Source of the DNA: Paraphysomonas bandaiensis
Taxonomy: Eukaryota; Protista; Chrysophyceae
Length of the DNA: 64,000 nt
Reading direction: 5' to 3'
Assembly (NCBI GenBank): GCA_965644295.1
Contig: CBFFRP010000028.1
Location: 1 to 64,000 of the forward strand
This document shows, in pieces, positions 3,704-27,800 of the stretch; the first letter of the stretch is position 1; every line of letters starts with the position of its first letter. A program made the translations under genes and the position numbers. Under the pieces are notes generated by a model. The model was not told the DNA's origin, did no database searches, and was given only the letters and a program-made list of their open reading frames with translations.

Positions 3704-4461
3704 GCATATATCATTCATATATATAAATACCACGGTGCACCCGCTCCGTAGGTCGCTATATTCACTGATGCAGACAGCAAGTGGGCCCTTACTGTACTGC
3801 AACAAAGAAATAGAACCGAGCTGGGTGTGCACCGTGTACCATGTACACCCGCTCAAGGCAAACATATCTATGAACTAACAGTGGAGTGGCCCCTCGCACT
3901 GATAGAACAAGGACAGATGCCGAGCTGGAGAGTTACATGGGGTACGTATTGAAAAGACAGCATGCATATATCATTCATACATATAAATACCACGATGCAC
4001 CCGCTCCGTAGGTATCTATATTCACTGATGCAGACAGCAAGTGGGCCCTTACTGTACTGCAACAAAGAAATAGAACCGAGCTGGATGTGCACCGTGTACC
4101 ACGTACACCCGCTCAAGGCAAACTTATCTATGAACTAACAGAGGAGTGGCCCCTCGCACTGATAGAACAAGGACAGATGCCGAGCTGGAGAGTTACATGG
4201 GGTACGTATTAAAAAGACAGCATGCATATATTATTCATACATATAAATACCACGATGCACCCGCTCCGTAGGTATCTATATTCACTGATGCAGACAGCAA
4301 GTGGGCCCTTACTGTACTGCAACAAAGAAATAGAACCGAGCTGGATGTGCACCGTGTACCATGTACACCCGCTCAAGGCAAACATATCTATGAACTAACA
4401 GAGGAGTGGCCCCTCACACTGATAGAACAAGGACAGATGCCGAGCTGGAGAGCTACATGGG
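3704..4461. repeat. Tandem repeat, ~2.9 x 260 bp, each unit a diverged dimer
   Basis: Units start at ~3704, 3964 and 4224. The blocks CACCCGCTC, AGTGG(G/C)CCCT and CCGAGCTGG each occur twice per unit. Confidence 0.9.
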
Positions 4462-7055
4462 CATGTAGATAGTAAAGTACGTATATGATAGTATGTCAAC
4501 ACAAGTATTCATAATAATTAATGTATAGTGCACCTATTCAGCAAGGAGCGTTAAAAGGAACCCTCTTATCCAATACCAGCCATGATATAATGTGTATAGT
4601 TGGTATGGTTCCGCATCAATCACACTCATACCACATGGAACAACGCTGACACCAACTCAACAACCAGCCAGCACAATACACGAGAGAAGCTGGTCAGATG
4701 AATACTGCTCCCAGTTAACAAAATCGACACCAACCACAAGCACACATATGCCTTCAACGAGATAGTGATGTGTGTGATGTGCAGACTATCGCTGTGTGAT
4801 ATTCAAATGATGGTAATGTATGTGTTTCCCCGCATGTTGTCTGTGGGGGAGGTGGAGTGTGGGGGGATTTTTGAATTATGTGTATATTTGCTGTGTACAG
4901 CAGCATACATATACATATATATGTATGTACAGTATACCATATAGCGGTATACGGTATACGTGTATACACACACACACAACATCAACATGAAAGTGTCCAA
5001 ATCTGAATGTGATACACACATGCGATATATATGCATATATATATACATACAAGCACTGAGCAGAGCTTATTATGATCATGCGAGACGACTCCATTTCCGA
5101 ATTTTCCAGTGCATCAGAGTATATGAGGGAGATGACGCCACTTGTATTGAGTGCTGTGATTGCAAAGTCTCATTCTCCTCTGCGCAGAAAGGCGCCTCCG
5201 TGAGGATGAAGCTCTGTGAACCCTGTATGATATGGCAGCGGTGATGTCCCTCCCCACCGAAGAAACGCATAACACGTAGAGGGAAACGAGGTGCCACGAA
5301 TGGGAGTGTCAAGGGGAGAAACGGGGGAGTTAAGGGAATCAACACAGCAAAAGGAGCAGCTGCAAAGTCCAAGTACCCAACGGTATGAATACACTTGATG
5401 TAGCTTGCAGATACTAATCACTTTTGTCATATCAGAATCATGTCATTGACCTCACAGCCGATAAGGCAAGATCTACGTTGCAGGGGAGTTGCGTCTTCAA
5501 AAGCAGGAGCAAAACCACAGAGAGGGGATGGCTGCCATGGAACAGTAGCTTGTTGTGGCCTGTGCCAGTCGTGATGTTTCTGAAAAGGACGTTGTTGATA
5601 GCTAAATATCTACTGATATGCCTCATATATCACCTACTACACCTCACAATGTTTCTACTATTATGTCCCATGTAGAACCCACTATGCCTCCTAACATGCC
5701 TGCAATGTCTAATGCACCTCATATTGGCATGATGTCTGTATCTCACGGGACACCGTCGTCCTCTGAAAGCAATGCATATACGTCGTCTGCTCTACTGCGT
5801 TACAGTTAAACAACAACATGCATGATGATAGCAGTTACAAGGAATATTTCCGTATGCAGGCGGCTCAAGACCAAGCGGCTCGACTTAAGCGTGCGCTCCA
5901 AGATGCCATAAAACTGCAATTACTTCAAATCATGTTTATGAAGTAGCATTACACTATATATATGTAGTAAGGGTTAATAAGATTTGTATCATGATCATTG
6001 GTAATTATAATATTATAACAAGCATCAATTGGGAACAACATGAGTATCAGTTAGTAGTACTCTCATAATGTTTTTTTTCCCTACAACCTGTTACTAACAA
6101 GCAAAACTTACAATAACATGTCAAAGTAGTTACTATAAGCATTTTAATTGATGTTTATGCCTCCAGAAGAATTCTTTTGACATCTCTACTATACGCTAAT
6201 TTCATATGAAAACCTGGTCAAATCCACTTCCCAGGTTTCATGCCCAGGTCGACTTAATGCAACGGAGCCTGGCTTGCGTGAAGAAAAAACTTCTACTCCT
6301 TCTTCGAAGCAGCTTTCTGATCCAACCCTGCAACGTAAGCATTCGATGCAATCCTTCATCGAGAACAATCTCGAGATGGCACGGCTAATCGAGGAGAACG
6401 CAAGGCTCCGAAAGGAGCGCTTGGTTCAAAAATTTTTGTCCTCATATATGAGGAATGATGATGGCAACTTTTAATGCTGGCAACATTAATGTATGTGCTT
6501 CACACTTATTGTTGGTTTCGTTGTTGTAACATACTACATACGAATTAATTATGTTGTTATTGCTAGGGTATTAAGATTAATATGATAATAAAATACTTCT
6601 CTTGTTGGTGAGTAGTAGTCATGAATGATTAGCAATTATGTAATGTATATATATATGAATCGAGATAATACTATTATGTATTAAATGTATAGTGATGTAT
6701 ACAAGTATCATAATAATACGCTAGATACATACTGTTTAAAAATATTGTAAAACGAAGTTTTCATTCTTTAACTTATGTTTTTAATTACTATTTCATTGAG
6801 ATGATACATCATAAAGTGATTTACTTTTGATTTTAAAACTTTGAATATGCCGTTAAAAACTTCAACTTCAACATTCAATAATTTGAATGTGACAAATTTT
6901 AATGCAAAAAATAATTTTAATATACTGACAATATTCAGCGCATACATACTTGCAACTATAGCACTATTATAGCCTTATATCTAAAAATTGACCGGGAAGC
7001 GGCCAATTGACCGTCTATGTATTGGGTTCACTTCTGGTTATCAAACCGGGTGTTG

Positions 7056-21887: not shown

Positions 21888-24800
21888 ATGAAAAGTACTA
21901 TTATACGGTCTGAAGTTGCTGAGGTATCCTTCGGGTTCTATTCCGATGAAGAAATTAGAAATGTTAGCTGCTGTCAAGTATGTTCTCCGATTGCCTTTGA
22001 TGCGCTTGGAAATCCACTAAGCAGGTCGGCGCGCTAAGACTGTGTTTCTATTATTTAATATACACGTTTTGCATGTTCAGTGGTCTTTATGATCCGAAGT
22101 TGGGCCCGACTTCACAGCATAGCTTGCCGTGCCCCACATGTGGCCTGTTGTATATCAATTGCCCTGGTCACCCTGGTCACATCGAGTTGGCCGTACCGGT
22201 GCGTTACTCTTTGATACTGCAATTTGGACTGATATTTTCGTTATATAGGTTTATCACCCCTTAATGTTCGCAAACATGTTTCAGCTATTGCGGGCACAGT
22301 GTGCAAATTGTCACAAGTAAGATGCTTCAATATTTATACAAAAAAATTACTGGTAATCAGGTTTCGTATTCCGTCATCCAAAGTACGAATAACATTAATA
22401 AAGTTAAAGTTATTGGAAATTGGTCTCGTGAAAGAGAGTGAGGAAGTCGAAGATCTGCTGAATCCCCCCGTCATTTTCAACGACTCAACTGCATGCGATG
22501 CTGCTGATGCGACAGTAGATATTGAGAGTCAGTTATCTCGTTATGAGGAACTGTATACGACTCACATACAGAAGTTTCCAGAGAGTCGCCCGGACTCCTT
22601 CCTCAAGAGACTTCAGAGGGAAGTTATCGATTCCTTCATAAAGGCTGCACTTGTGTGTAAGAAGTGTGACTCCTGTGGGTCATTTTCACCACCACTACGT
22701 AAGGATGGACATGCAAAACTATTTGAGAAACCACTTGCAAAACGAATCCGAAAGTCCATGCAGGGAATGAAGATTAAACTCAAGGTGATTATTTATGCGT
22801 TTTCATTTGGTTATCACGATATCGTGTAGCCTGCACTGGAGACTCTTGCTAGGGACGATCATATGGCGGCTGATATTAGTGATGATTCTGATGATGATAT
22901 GGTTTTGAATGCGGATGACAGCGAGGAAGAAGGCGAGGCTAGATACTCGGAGAAGGATAAATATTTAGCACCCTTCGAGGTAGAGGCCAGGATGAAATTG
23001 CTCTGGAAGTCTCACCATGAGTATCTGGATTTCGTCTGGGGCAGGGTATCTCTTCGCGCTGCCGCCATTTTCAAAAAATCAGTTTTACCTGAACATAGTA
23101 CCCTTTGGAGAATTTTTTTTATGAAAACTGTTCTTGTTCCTCCGTCTCGTTTTCGGCCACCATCGGACCTGGGTGACATGCAGGCGGAACACCCCCAGAA
23201 TATACACCTGTCCAAGGTCCTTACTATAAATGAAAGAATTATGAAAGCGATCAGTCTTGATAAAACCGCAAGCGAAATGTCAGTTGAAAGTGATGTCACA
23301 CCTCAAATTGAAAATATGCTGCATATTTCAAAGCTAGTTACTGATTGGATTGACTTGCAAAACGCAGTAAATTGCTTCATGGACTCCAGCAAAGACCCGA
23401 ACCAAAGAGCTGGTGAGGACTCTAACATTGGAATTCGCCAAGTCCTAGAGAAAAAAGAAGGTCTTTTTCGGAGACATATGATGGGAAAACGGGTGAATTA
23501 TTGCTGTCGATCAGTGATATCTCCAGATCCTTTCCTCGGTATGAACGAAATTGGAATTCCTGTACAATTTGCGAAGGAGCTACATTACCCGACTCCAGTC
23601 ACGTCATGGAATATAAAGATGCTTCGACAAATGGTTGAGAATGGTCCCAATGTTTATCCAGGTGTGTATTATATGTTGATAACACAGCTTTCATTTCGTA
23701 AACGTCGATTACCACTGTATCACTTGAAATATTTATCTACAAAACCGACTGGCTTATGATTGCTTAATCTGTATGTGTGCGTGTAGTGTATCTGTGAATT
23801 GTGTGCAATGATGTCACAACAAGTTTGAGAACAGAATGAGGTACAGCCTCTGGTGTCGACTAACCCTGTGGTACTGAGCACGTAATATGTTATGTGTTTT
23901 GTTGTATTGTATGTAACAGTACAGCTGTCTTTGATTGTTGATGTAATGTGTATATATGAAACCCACTGGCTTATGATTGCTTATTCTGTATGTGTGCGTG
24001 TAGTGTATCTGTGAATTGTGTGCAATGATGTCACAACAAGTTTGAGAACAGAATGAGGTACAGCCTCTGGTGTCGACTAACCCTGTGGTACTGAGCACGT
24101 AATATGTTCTATGTTTTGTTGTATCGTATGTAACATTACAGCTGTCTTTGATTGTTGATGTAATGTGTATATATGAAACCCACTGGCTTATGATTGCTTA
24201 ATCTGTATGTGTGCGTGTAGTGTATCTGTGAATTGTGTGCAATGATGTCACAACAAGTTTGAGAACAGAATGAGGTACAGCCTCTGGTGTCGACTAACCC
24301 TGTGGTACTGAGCACGTAATATGTTCTATGTTTTGTTGTATCGTATGTAACATTACAGCTGTCTTTGATTGTTGATGTAATGTGTATATATGAAACCCAC
24401 TGGCTTATGATTGCTTAATCTGTATGTGTGCGTGTAGTGTATCTGTGAATTGTGTGCAATGATGTCACAACAAGTTTGAGAACAGAATGAGGTACAGCCT
24501 CTGGTGTCGACTAACCCTGTGGTACTGAGCACGTAATATGTTATGTGTTTTGTTGTATCGTATGTAACAGTACAGCTGTCTTTGATTGTTGATGTAATGT
24601 GTATATATGAAACCCACTGGCTTATGATTGCTTAATCTGTATGTGTGCGTGTAGTGTATCTGTGAATTGTGTGCAATGATGTCACAACAAGTTTGAGAAC
24701 AGAATGAGGTACAGCCTCTGGTGTCGACTAACCCTGTGGTACTGAGCACGTAATATGTTCTATGTTTTGTTGTATCGTATGTAACATTACAGCTGTCTTT

Positions 24801-27800
24801 GATTGTTGATGTAATGTGTATATATGAAACCCACTGGCTTATGATTGCTTAATCTGTATGTGTGCGTGTAGTGTATCTGTGAATTGTGTGCAATGATGTC
24901 ACAACAAGTTTGAGAACAGAATGAGGTACAGCCTCTGGTGTCGACTAACCCTGTGGTACTGAGCACGTAATTTGTTATGTGTTTTGTTGTATCGTATGTA
25001 AAATTACAGCTGTCTTTGATTGTTGATGTAATGTGTATATATGAAACCCACTGGCTTATGATTGCTTAATCTGTATGTGTGCGTGTAGTGTATCTGTGAA
25101 TTGTGTGCAATGATGTCACAACAAGTTTGAGAACAGAATGAGGTACAGCCTCTGGTGTCGACTAACCCTGTGGTACTGAGCACGTAATATGTTCTATGTT
25201 TTGTTGTATCGTATGTAACATTACAGCTGTCTTTGATTGTTGATGTAATGTGTATATATGAAACCCACTGGCTTATGATTGCTTAATCTGTATGTGTGCG
25301 TGTAGTGTATCTGTGAATTGTGTGCAATGATGTCACAACAAGTTTGAGAACAGAATGAGGTACAGCCTCTGGTGTCGACTAACCCTGTGGTACTGAGCAC
25401 GTAATATGTTCTATGTTTTGTTGTATCGTATGTAACATTACAGCTGTCTTTGATTGTTGATGTAATGTGTATATATGAAACCCACTGGCTTATGATTGCT
25501 TAATCTGTATGTGTGCGTGTAGTGTATCTGTGAATTGTGTGCAATGATGTCACAACAAGTTTGAGAACAGAATGAGGTACAGCCTCTGGTGTCGACTAAC
25601 CCTGTGGTACTGAGCACGTAATATGTTATGTGTATTGTTGTATTGTATGTAACATTTTAACTCTCTTTGATTGTTGATGTAATGTGTATATATGTTACTA
25701 CCAGCGTTACTGTAAGAATATGTTACTGTTGATACTCTCCTAGCTGATATGTTAATGTTTTTATGTTATTTTATTGTAGGTGCCAATCAAATTGAAACAG
25801 GTGATGGAAAAATTGTCAAACTAGACAGGTTTTCGAGTCAAGAAAGGAGTGCAAAGGCTAAACTGCTTATGTCTGGGCCTGGTGTGAAAGTGTACCGTCA
25901 CTTGATCAATGGGGATGTACTGCTTGTTAACAGGCAACCAACTCTCCACAAACCTGGTATTATGGCACACAAGGCGAGAGTTCTGCAGCATGTGAAAGAG
26001 CAGGTAGATTTTTACGCTGCTGTATATGAGTTCCTTGTCATCCACAACCTGCTATGTAGACGTTGCGGATGAATTATGCCAATTGCAATGCGTATAACGC
26101 TGATTTCGACGGGGATGAAATGAACTGCCATTTTGTGCAGGTAATTTAGTCTGGAATTTGTAATTTGCTAAATGTTTGCACAGAATGAAATCGCCCGTGC
26201 CGAAGCGACTTCAATATGTAACACTGACAATCAGTATATTGTACCAACCAGTGGAAATCCATTGCGTGGTCTAATTCAGGATCATGTTGCCAGTGGTGTT
26301 AAACTTACTTGCAAAGAAACATTTCTCAACAAAGAACAATTCCAACAATTGTTGTACATTGCCGTCACTGGCCTTCCTGGAACCGAAGTTGTTTCGAGTG
26401 TAGAAGAAATGATGATGCCGATCCCATCTGTGTTGAAGCCGGTGCAGCTGTGGACGGGTAAACAAGTTGTTACTGCACTGCTTCGTCATTTGTGTCGTCC
26501 ACCACTTCCCGCTCTACACCTGGACGGAAAAACGCGAACACCTCCGACGGCGTTCGGTCATAGTGAAAGGGAACACGTTGTTGTGTTCAGGTTCGGGGAG
26601 CTACTATGTGGTGTTCTAGATAAATCTTCCATGGGAAACGCATCGTTGGGAATTGTCCATGCGATATATGAGCTTTATGGATCCGAATTGGCAGGCCTCA
26701 TTTTAAATGCATTCGGCAGGCTGTTTACCTTCCATTTGCAGTCAGCGGGACATACTTGCGGAATTGAGGACCTAACATTGACTAAATCCGCGGATATGGA
26801 AAGGGCTAGATTACTTAACAAAGTCCAAATTGATGCCGCAATAGGACTTCGAGAGTATTTGGAAAGTGGAGATTCTAATACAACTAGGAAACGATCAGAC
26901 CAACCCGTTTCCGCCTCTGATATCGCTGATTTTGAGAAGAAAGTGTCGGTATTATTACAGGCCGATAAGCAGGGTGGTAAGGTTAAGCTAGATGGAGCTT
27001 TCCAAGCCGTTGTAAACAAATCTGCAAGTGACGTTTTAAAAGCGTGTCTTCCTACGGGTCTTCAAATTCAATTCCCGAAAAATAATTTTTCCATGATGGT
27101 GTTAACTGGGGCAAAAGGATCCGCCGTCAATCAGAGTCAAATTTCTTGTTTTCTTGGACAACAAGCTTTAGAAGGACAGCGTGTTCCAATGATGATATCG
27201 GGTAAAACTCTTCCATCATTTAGGCCATATGACTGTCGTGCTCGTGCTGGTGGATTCATTACTGATCGCTTTTTGACCGGTGTTCGTCCACAAGAGTATT
27301 ATTTCCATTGTATGGCTGGGCGGGAAGGTCTTGTTGACACCGCAGTGAAGACATCTCGTTCTGGATATTTACAGAGATGCTTAGTTAAGCACTTGGAAGA
27401 GCTACGCGTTCAGTACGACATGACAGTAAGAGACAGTGCTGGAAATGTTGTTCAATTTCTTTATGGTGAAGATGGCTTAGATCCCACAAGTGCAGCACTT
27501 CTTGGTGGGAAAGACAATCAGTTACAGTTTCTATCCCGCAACCATCAAGCACTGGTGTATAAGTATTCAGTTCACGGGAACTATTTCGAACAGGGCCTTG
27601 AGATGGATTCGGCAAAAGCGTATCAACTGCGAATGGATAATGCGCGAAGTGTCGTTGATCAATGCACTGATATACCTCTTGGCAAATGGAAATTCAACAA
27701 GAAGTCTATCATTATGGCCAGAAAAAAACTTGACGACTCGAAGCCATGGTCCCGATATAATATGCATAAAAAGTGGTTTATTGCTGAAATAATCAAGGTC

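Follow-up and report, generated by a model that had tools for sequence, protein, structure and literature searches.

An intron of the gene for the largest subunit of RNA polymerase I (Pol I), RPA1 (RPA190), in the chrysophyte Paraphysomonas bandaiensis contains nine tandem copies of what is, on comparative sequence grounds, very probably a true sense-strand, intron-encoded gene for a small nucleolar RNA (snoRNA) of the box C/D class. The intron lies on contig CBFFRP010000028.1 of assembly GCA_965644295.1, of which positions 1 to 64,000 of the forward strand were analyzed; this whole stretch of 64,000 nucleotides is referred to as the window, and the coordinates of the features are collected in Table 1. 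The whole explanation, i.e., that nine genes of one C/D family without an Rfam model, carrying guides for large subunit (LSU) ribosomal RNA (rRNA), reside in the RPA1 intron, is advanced here with good confidence. Several snoRNAs per intron are already known, and what is new is the ninefold presence of one gene in a single protein-gene intron together with a paralogous array in a second host. The finding is real and is a moderately unusual variant of a known arrangement; a special link between snoRNA dose and Pol I is unproven, and the second host weakens the idea of one.

Host Gene, Intron, and Array

The open frames flanking the array encode RPA1, with an E value of 4e-222 for the match to yeast RPA190 and with Rpb1 domains 1–5 of Pfam present in the host protein. 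The nearest named protein relatives are those of chrysophytes (65% in Chlorochromonas danica, 63% in Ochromonas and Chromulina), metagenome proteins are closer (73–79% identity), and the sequencing runs containing the host sequence are marine. In run X10, a spliced RNA contig of 4645 nt links 23659 to 25778 (GT..AG, cut +2) and thereby delimits the intron at 23662–25779; this single splice across the stretch indicates that the whole 2118 nt are removed as one intron. The same contig also lacks the 56-nt intron at 26002–26057. Among the intron sizes given in the original prediction, the contig confirms the long intron of 2118 bp and one (56 nt) of the others, which had been put at 43–56 bp. The further description of the intron as 9 × 217 bp is correct for the nine 217-bp units, although the array covers 1953 of the 2118 intron bases.

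According to exact-match positions, an identical 79-nt cassette recurs at 23803 + 217k (k = 0–8). Fourteen columns are variable among the nine aligned units: three lie upstream of the cassette, the other 11 lie downstream, and the cassette itself contains none, which bears out the earlier statement that the cassette is identical in all nine units and that the differences lie in the spacers. The chance that no variable column falls in the cassette is 0.002 if the columns are independent and approximately 0.02 with about nine independent events. Briefly, each cassette begins and ends with the terminal stem GUGC/GCAC, which pairs as predicted, and the precursor extension of this stem reaches 8–9 bp with G-U pairs rather than the 7 bp first claimed. 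One unpaired base between the stem and the C box yields the 3-nt bulge of a kink-turn (K-turn). A strict motif-plus-stem detector returned 4.25 cassettes per kb in the intron versus 0.02–0.05 per kb in the rest of the window, and its four matches outside the intron all lie in exons.

Table 1. Features of the RPA1 intron and of the first snoRNA cassette (positions in the window).
Feature	Position	Strand	Description and basis
RPA1 exon 5′ of the host intron	22863–23661	+	Ends ...NGPNVYP plus G of a split Gly codon; Pfam RNA_pol_Rpb1_2 (E 1e-19), spliced RNA contig, translation
Host intron	23662–25779	+	2118 nt, GT..AG, phase 1; skipped exactly by the X10 RNA contig; relatives have an intron at the same codon
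RPA1 exon 3′ of the host intron	25780–26001	+	ANQIETGDG...; RNA contig, translation, comparison with relatives
Tandem array	23742–25694	+	Tandem Repeats Finder on the window: period 217 bp, 9.0 copies, 98% matches, no indels; DNA-run depth ratio
snoRNA cassette, copy 1	23803–23881	+	79 nt; exact match; homology to relatives confined here
Cassette copies 2–5	24020–24098, 24237–24315, 24454–24532, 24671–24749	+	Identical to copy 1
Cassette copies 6–9	24888–24966, 25105–25183, 25322–25400, 25539–25617	+	Identical to copy 1
Terminal stem, 5′ half GUGC	23803–23806	+	Pairs with GCAC at 23878–23881; precursor extension UUGUGUGC/GCACGUAA
C box AUGAUGU	23808–23814	+	Aligned counterpart in relatives: AUGAUGA or GUGAUGA
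D′ guide core AAGUUUGAGAA	23821–23831	+	11 perfect bp with own LSU UUCUCAAACUU
D′ box CAGA	23832–23835	+	CUGA in relatives; alignment A1
C′ box AUGAGGU, degenerate	23836–23842	+	Overlaps the internal hairpin GAGG-UACAG-CCUC (23838–23850)
D guide UGUCGACUAACCCUGUGGUA	23854–23873	+	Perfect pairing of the final 10 nt with own LSU UACCACAGGG
D box CUGA	23874–23877	+	Invariant in alignment A1

Conservation in the Orthologous Intron of Relatives

In RPA1 genomic contigs of relatives, the orthologous junction (...YPG/ANQ..., phase 1) was located by tblastn. Seven related stramenopile lineages carry one to seven C/D cassettes in the same phase-1 intron, with spacers unrelated to those of the window, and the conservation of boxes and guide at this site upholds the prediction of a box C/D snoRNA-like gene in the Pol I gene intron. 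The related contigs do not derive from the same organism, because their exon identity is 70–86%. BLAST homology to the window unit is limited to unit positions 58–139, i.e., to the cassette. L010 and L011 represent one organism (one difference in 1026 nt), with flanking exons 83% identical to those of the window and with seven cassettes in an intron of approximately 1027 nt. Five of the seven are 75–77% identical to the window cassette and two have a different 5′ half, the D guide being common to all; the spacers of L010 are rich in pyrimidines and show no relation to the window's spacers. The cassettes of L010/L011 and of L014, whose contig starts inside the same intron and holds at least three of them, show 75–82% identity, and a 27-nt block comprising the D guide, the D box, and the stem is 100% identical between the window and the relatives. 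One L010 cassette (the sixth, 2289–2385) appears decayed, with CUAA as its D box and an altered guide.

In L095, L093, L096, L097, and L098, the flanking exons are 70–78% identical to those of the window and the proteins 63–68% over the large exon. At this site, the L095 intron (325 nt) contains two cassettes and that of L093 at least one; in L096, L097, and L098, the introns measure 514–779 nt, and the three or four C/D cassettes in each differ from one another and form a mixed cluster. In each of these mixed clusters, the guide core CCUGUGGU followed by CUGA is present in one or two cassettes; the L095 and L093 introns also contain this combination. Other C/D snoRNAs were observed in the RPA1 intron at 3861–3951 in L096, approximately 5555–5640 in L097, and 5307–5396 and 5660–5742 in L098. 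One other C/D snoRNA of these distant relatives has a conserved D′ guide, UCAUGCACCACU, followed by CUGA, and this guide is presumably complementary to a conserved 18S segment.

Alignment A1, comprising seven type-1 cassettes (the type found in RPA1 here), is invariant in the terminal stem, C box, D′ guide core, D′ box, D guide, and D box, and variable in the internal segment and at the D′ guide's 5′ end; the core of this guide, AGUUUGAGA, is invariant in three lineages. In all 11 distinct cassettes, the terminal stem has the register of a K-turn: a single base stays unpaired ahead of the C box, and the D box passes directly into the stem. The stems span 3–8 bp, and ten different stem sequences, four in close lineages and six in distant ones, all pair; among the cassettes sharing the D guide, they are wholly different from one lineage to another, as illustrated by UUGUGUGC/GCACGUAA, GGAGCAC/GUGCUCU, AGAGGGGC/GCCUCUUU, UGGAC/GUUCA, and ACAGUCUC/GAGAUUGU. 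The internal hairpin after D′ covaries as well (GAGG/CCUC here, GAAG/CUUC in L010, and GAGU/ACUC in L014). As judged from this comparison, the RPA1 intron is an old snoRNA host in the chrysophyte-related clade, conserved but not obligatory. L081 has no intron at that point, and the lack of a cassette in the RPA1 gene of some relatives indicates that the RPA1 location is not essential.

A first pattern scan of metagenomes gave no match. A second scan gave 52 matches, approximately the number expected by chance according to a hand estimate; L039, L054, and L061 share 19 nt with the cassette and were rejected as one bacterial sequence inside a coding gene. L056, which is labelled as a human-skin metagenome, was excluded from all comparisons.

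Other snoRNA Arrays in the Genome

The assembly searched (G000) amounts to 62.5 Mb, distributed over 669 contigs. A second array, which has its D guide in common with the first, is located on the minus strand of contig C238 (8.7 units of 153 bp, 99% identity), inside a 1694-nt GT..AG intron (C238:134876–136569; L090 5877–7570) of a PI3/PI4-kinase gene whose frame continues across the intron. Its unit contains a 99-nt type-2 cassette with the stem GCAC/GUGC, the C box AGGAUGA, the C′ box AUGAUGC, and a hairpin, in which the D′ guide UACCUUAAAACUAAGUUGGAU is followed by the D′ box CAGA and the D guide GUGUCGACCAACCCUGUGGUA by the D box CUGA. Seven copies are identical, and both ends of the array are partial copies. 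One copy (L090, approximately 6017–6169) appears decayed: its D′ guide lacks 1 nt and contains a substitution. The 13-mer CCTGTGGTACTGA occurs 18 times in the genome, nine times per array and nowhere else, and its reversed control occurs 0 times. In L010, both cassette types are found in one RPA1 intron; in this genome, they are found in separate hosts and each is homogenized.

Furthermore, a search of the genome with the Rfam model of U14 gave 58 matches, one on C413 and 57 in an array on C434 (G000:C434:87990–102345, minus strand; L091) with a period of approximately 255 bp. The match to SNORD14 (49 bits, E 5e-8) is below the gathering score, and the U14-like unit bears the 18S-complementary CUUCCUUGGAUGU element. 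The Rfam search of the genome for SNORD61 gave no match, and control genomes likewise gave none. The only words common to the spacers of the three arrays are GU/AU-rich and of low complexity. The PI3/PI4-kinase array and the U14-like array indicate that homogeneous snoRNA arrays are a habit of this genome and are not special to Pol I. The idea that the RPA1 array ties the dose of a guide specifically to Pol I expression, put forward in the original prediction, is weakened in that the same D guide is present nine times in the PI3/PI4-kinase intron and a U14-like array of approximately 57 copies is present elsewhere. In favor of some link to the host, the RPA1 intron hosts snoRNAs across lineages down to approximately 63–68% RPA1 identity.

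Guides and Predicted rRNA Targets

Targets were scanned for with each guide anchored next to its box, against 3985 nt of the genome's own rRNA, and P values were obtained from shuffled guides. The D guide forms 10 perfect bp with LSU UACCACAGGG and 12 of 13 pairs overall (P 0.03), and the predicted target of 2′-O-methylation is the A at the fifth position of UACC[A]CAGGGAUAAC, at the LSU site UACC[A]CAGGG. This site is taken by us to lie a few bases 5′ of the GGGAUAAC motif in the peptidyl-transferase region, close to the peptidyl-transferase center. With CAGA as the D′ box, the D′ guide forms 11 perfect bp with LSU UUCUCAAACUU (P 0.03), and the second C (fifth position) of LSU UUCU[C]AAACUU is its predicted target of 2′-O-methylation. 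UUGA and CAGA had both been named as candidate D′ boxes; CAGA, which is also the aligned box, is preferred, and UUGA gives no rRNA target (P 0.98). The cassette had been described as one rRNA guide, a description that no longer fits two guides with targets in the genome's own LSU rRNA. We know of no methylation of either predicted nucleotide in yeast. At positions 9–13, the guide bases in L095, L096, and L097 depart from those of the window, yet 9–13 pairs with the same LSU site are retained; the L095 guides have 12–13 paired positions, a score reached by 0 of 100 shuffles. These guide changes with retained pairing are the best support for the predicted D target.

A block, GUCGAC(U/C)AA, is conserved upstream of the pairing core in the closer lineages. 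For the type-2 D′ guide UACCUUAAAACUAAGUUGGAU, the 3985 nt of available rRNA contain no target. A third antisense element, GUCGACUAACCC against LSU GGGUGAGUCGAU, was rejected as not above chance (RNAduplex P 0.39), and a U-to-C variant in the paralogues would weaken its pairing further. A whole-genome search with the full 20-nt D guide and up to three mismatches gave only the arrays themselves and unrelated repeats. Eight repeat copies with a period of 1107 bp (G000:C644:31413–39181) match the guide complement with three mismatches and are probably unrelated.

The rRNA of the assembly comprises a full small subunit (SSU) rRNA and 5.8S rRNA on C525, LSU model positions 865–1449 on C543 and approximately 1460 to 2949 on C545, and a small LSU piece on C528. 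On C525 (L024), LSU fragments (model 818–1347) lie beside the intact SSU and 5.8S sequences and no LSU follows the 5.8S sequence. C543 (L025) starts inside the LSU sequence, which ends at model position 1449, and no complete LSU was found among the contigs. The LSU sequence on C545 (L017) is preceded by a short internal repeat, and the pieces of ribosomal DNA, including that on C528 (L028), are truncated or rearranged.

Several observations weigh against the cassette being an LSU-guide snoRNA gene. Rfam gives zero matches in the whole window at gathering thresholds, and no catalogued family with this guide pair was found; under permissive settings, the only matches are sub-threshold and generic, the best being a weak one to the generic C/D model SCARNA18 (14.5 bits versus a threshold of 40, E 3.4), which falls exactly on the cassette and itself speaks for the C/D reading. 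The C′ box is degenerate and poorly conserved, is not conserved in L010, and directly abuts D′; the D′ box (CAGA or CUGA) is conserved and correctly placed. The guide duplexes of 10–11 bp lie near the lower limit of the lengths usually found, and no partner of the GUCGAC part of the D guide was found in the available rRNA. Moreover, the 5′ 865 and the 3′ approximately 450 model positions of the LSU (approximately 1300) are missing from the assembly, and a better target is possible there. L012/L013, L083, and L094 have only a 60–76-nt intron at the site, without a cassette. Finally, contigs of the intron repeat in RNA runs have low depth (4.8 versus 336 for exons in X10; 9.8 for a contig over the last unit versus 1.4–4 for exons in X16) and are equally explained by pre-mRNA; this depth is no evidence for a discrete small RNA, because it sums nine copies and the contigs carry no RNA ends.

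The snoRNA-derived cassettes could instead be orphan or cis-acting, forming intron structures similar to small nucleolar ribonucleoproteins (snoRNPs) that modulate RPA1 splicing or transcript level without rRNA methylation. Such a role would suit the conservation of the 20-nt D-guide block beyond the 10-bp pairing, with its GUCGAC part lacking a target above chance, as well as the type-2 D′ guide without a target in the available rRNA and the host intron conserved over long distances. We nevertheless regard it as unlikely, since two guides are complementary, in the canonical register, to the LSU rRNA of this genome, distant relatives alter guide bases yet pair with the same LSU site, the same guide is also present in an unrelated host gene, and some relatives have no cassette in RPA1. 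Guidance of LSU modification is therefore the preferred role of the cassettes.

Copy Number

In two DNA runs, one of which may be the source of the assembly, the k-mer depth of the repeat is approximately 5–14 times that of its flanks (X1, 210–369 versus 23–28; X3, 464–938 versus 87–104), a ratio that fits about nine copies or somewhat more and indicates that the multi-copy state is not an assembly artefact. It is accordingly very improbable that the true locus has one or two copies and that the nine were produced in assembly. Tandem repeats are error-prone in assemblies, and none of the reads and contigs obtained crosses the whole RPA1 array; however, the excess depth is present in two runs with different organism labels, the units bear distinct spacer variants in a fixed order, and a second array of the same kind is present in the genome. 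The least probable explanation, an ordinary intronic minisatellite in which C- and D-box-like motifs occur by chance, could draw on the shortness of the motifs, the lack of an Rfam family, and a cassette no more stable than shuffled sequence (z +0.57), but is already contradicted by the comparative data, since conservation in the orthologous intron of seven other lineages, whose spacers are unrelated, is limited to the cassette, the terminal stem covaries, both guides match the genome's own rRNA, and the background rate of such motif sets is 0.02–0.05 per kb.

Proposed Processing and Origin

All nine genes have the sense orientation in the RPA1 intron, a spliceosomal one, and are therefore transcribed by RNA polymerase II within the RPA1 pre-mRNA. 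By extension of the established C/D pathway, Snu13, Nop56, Nop58, and fibrillarin would assemble co-transcriptionally on the K-turn of each unit, which would be built from the terminal stem, the 3-nt bulge, and the C and D boxes. Cuts between the units would then separate the intron, and exonucleases would trim each piece to the snoRNP boundary. Endonucleolytic release, a sound deduction, would be needed because exonucleases entering from the two ends of the intron after debranching could liberate no more than the outermost copies. The spacers show no excess of structure over shuffled sequence (z 0.04), and no cleavage signal was found in them. Guided by the mature RNA of approximately 79 nt, fibrillarin would methylate the two LSU positions.

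With regard to the origin of the array, amplification by unequal crossing-over is suggested because whole units are 98% identical and the spacer variants are ordered. An ancestral mixed cluster was probably replaced by one cassette type, which was then amplified and homogenized to nine copies, most likely by this process, and the same probably happened to the paralogue with the same D guide in the PI3/PI4-kinase intron. A broader proposal is only tentative, and we consider it rather doubtful: snoRNA dose might be set by homogenized arrays (nine copies in RPA1, nine in the PI4-kinase gene, and approximately 57 U14-like copies on C434), with a need for a pathway that frees up to nine snoRNPs from one intron and with an LSU guide coupled to the catalytic subunit of Pol I.

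Comparison with Known Systems

Passages of PMC2656528 describe clustered snoRNA genes within a single intron in plants, a two-gene intronic snoRNA cluster in Plasmodium, and intronic snoRNA clusters in rice (Liang et al., 2002, as cited therein). The RPA1 array resembles the plant-type cluster in that two or more sense-strand C/D genes, here nine in 23662–25779, reside in one spliced intron of a protein gene, and in that release of the internal copies would require cuts between them. It differs in that one gene is present nine times, in 217-bp units that are 98% identical including the spacers, and in that the host encodes the largest subunit of Pol I. In the closest sampled relative, the cluster mixes two cassette types with a common D guide, and more distant relatives hold different snoRNAs.

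In trypanosomatids and Euglena, modification-guide snoRNA genes are frequently clustered, according to passages of PMC2784804. These clusters and the RPA1 array have in common multi-copy, tandemly reiterated, polycistronic snoRNA genes, and the U14-like array of approximately 57 copies is a further reiterated case in this genome. Trypanosomatid and Euglena repeats usually contain several different snoRNAs per unit and are located outside protein-gene introns, whereas each unit of the RPA1 array holds a single gene and splicing removes the surrounding intron in one piece. Human SNORD116 and SNORD115 comprise tens of near-identical intron-derived C/D copies, each placed in a separate intron of a host that is repetitive and non-coding, and are orphan guides. 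The likeness lies in tandem, near-identical copies of one intron-derived box C/D snoRNA; by contrast, a single splice here joins the RPA1 exons across nine copies with no exons between them, and the RPA1 cassette has predicted rRNA targets. The cassette shares the general architecture of the C/D families of Rfam, although no family reaches its gathering score in the window.

Stramenopile snoRNAs are almost unannotated, and a literature search gave only passing mentions of them. The locus adds a new, well-supported family of C/D snoRNAs, for which two LSU targets are predicted, and the RPA1 site provides an evolutionary series from no cassette, through one or two and mixed clusters of three to seven, to the homogenized nine described here. 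The array offers a natural system for studying the snoRNP yield per intron and the nuclease that separates the copies, and for asking whether the copy number in a host intron tunes rRNA modification. For annotators, it is a warning that intronic "minisatellites" of this genome can be gene arrays.

A shorter repeat was observed elsewhere in the window, at 3704–4461, where a 260-bp unit is present 2.9 times with 97% identity. Two long hairpins form when its plus strand is folded (−70.8 kcal/mol, z −3.0); ACA lies close to the 3′ end, Rfam gives no match, and on this folding model the repeat may represent an H/ACA snoRNA mini-array.

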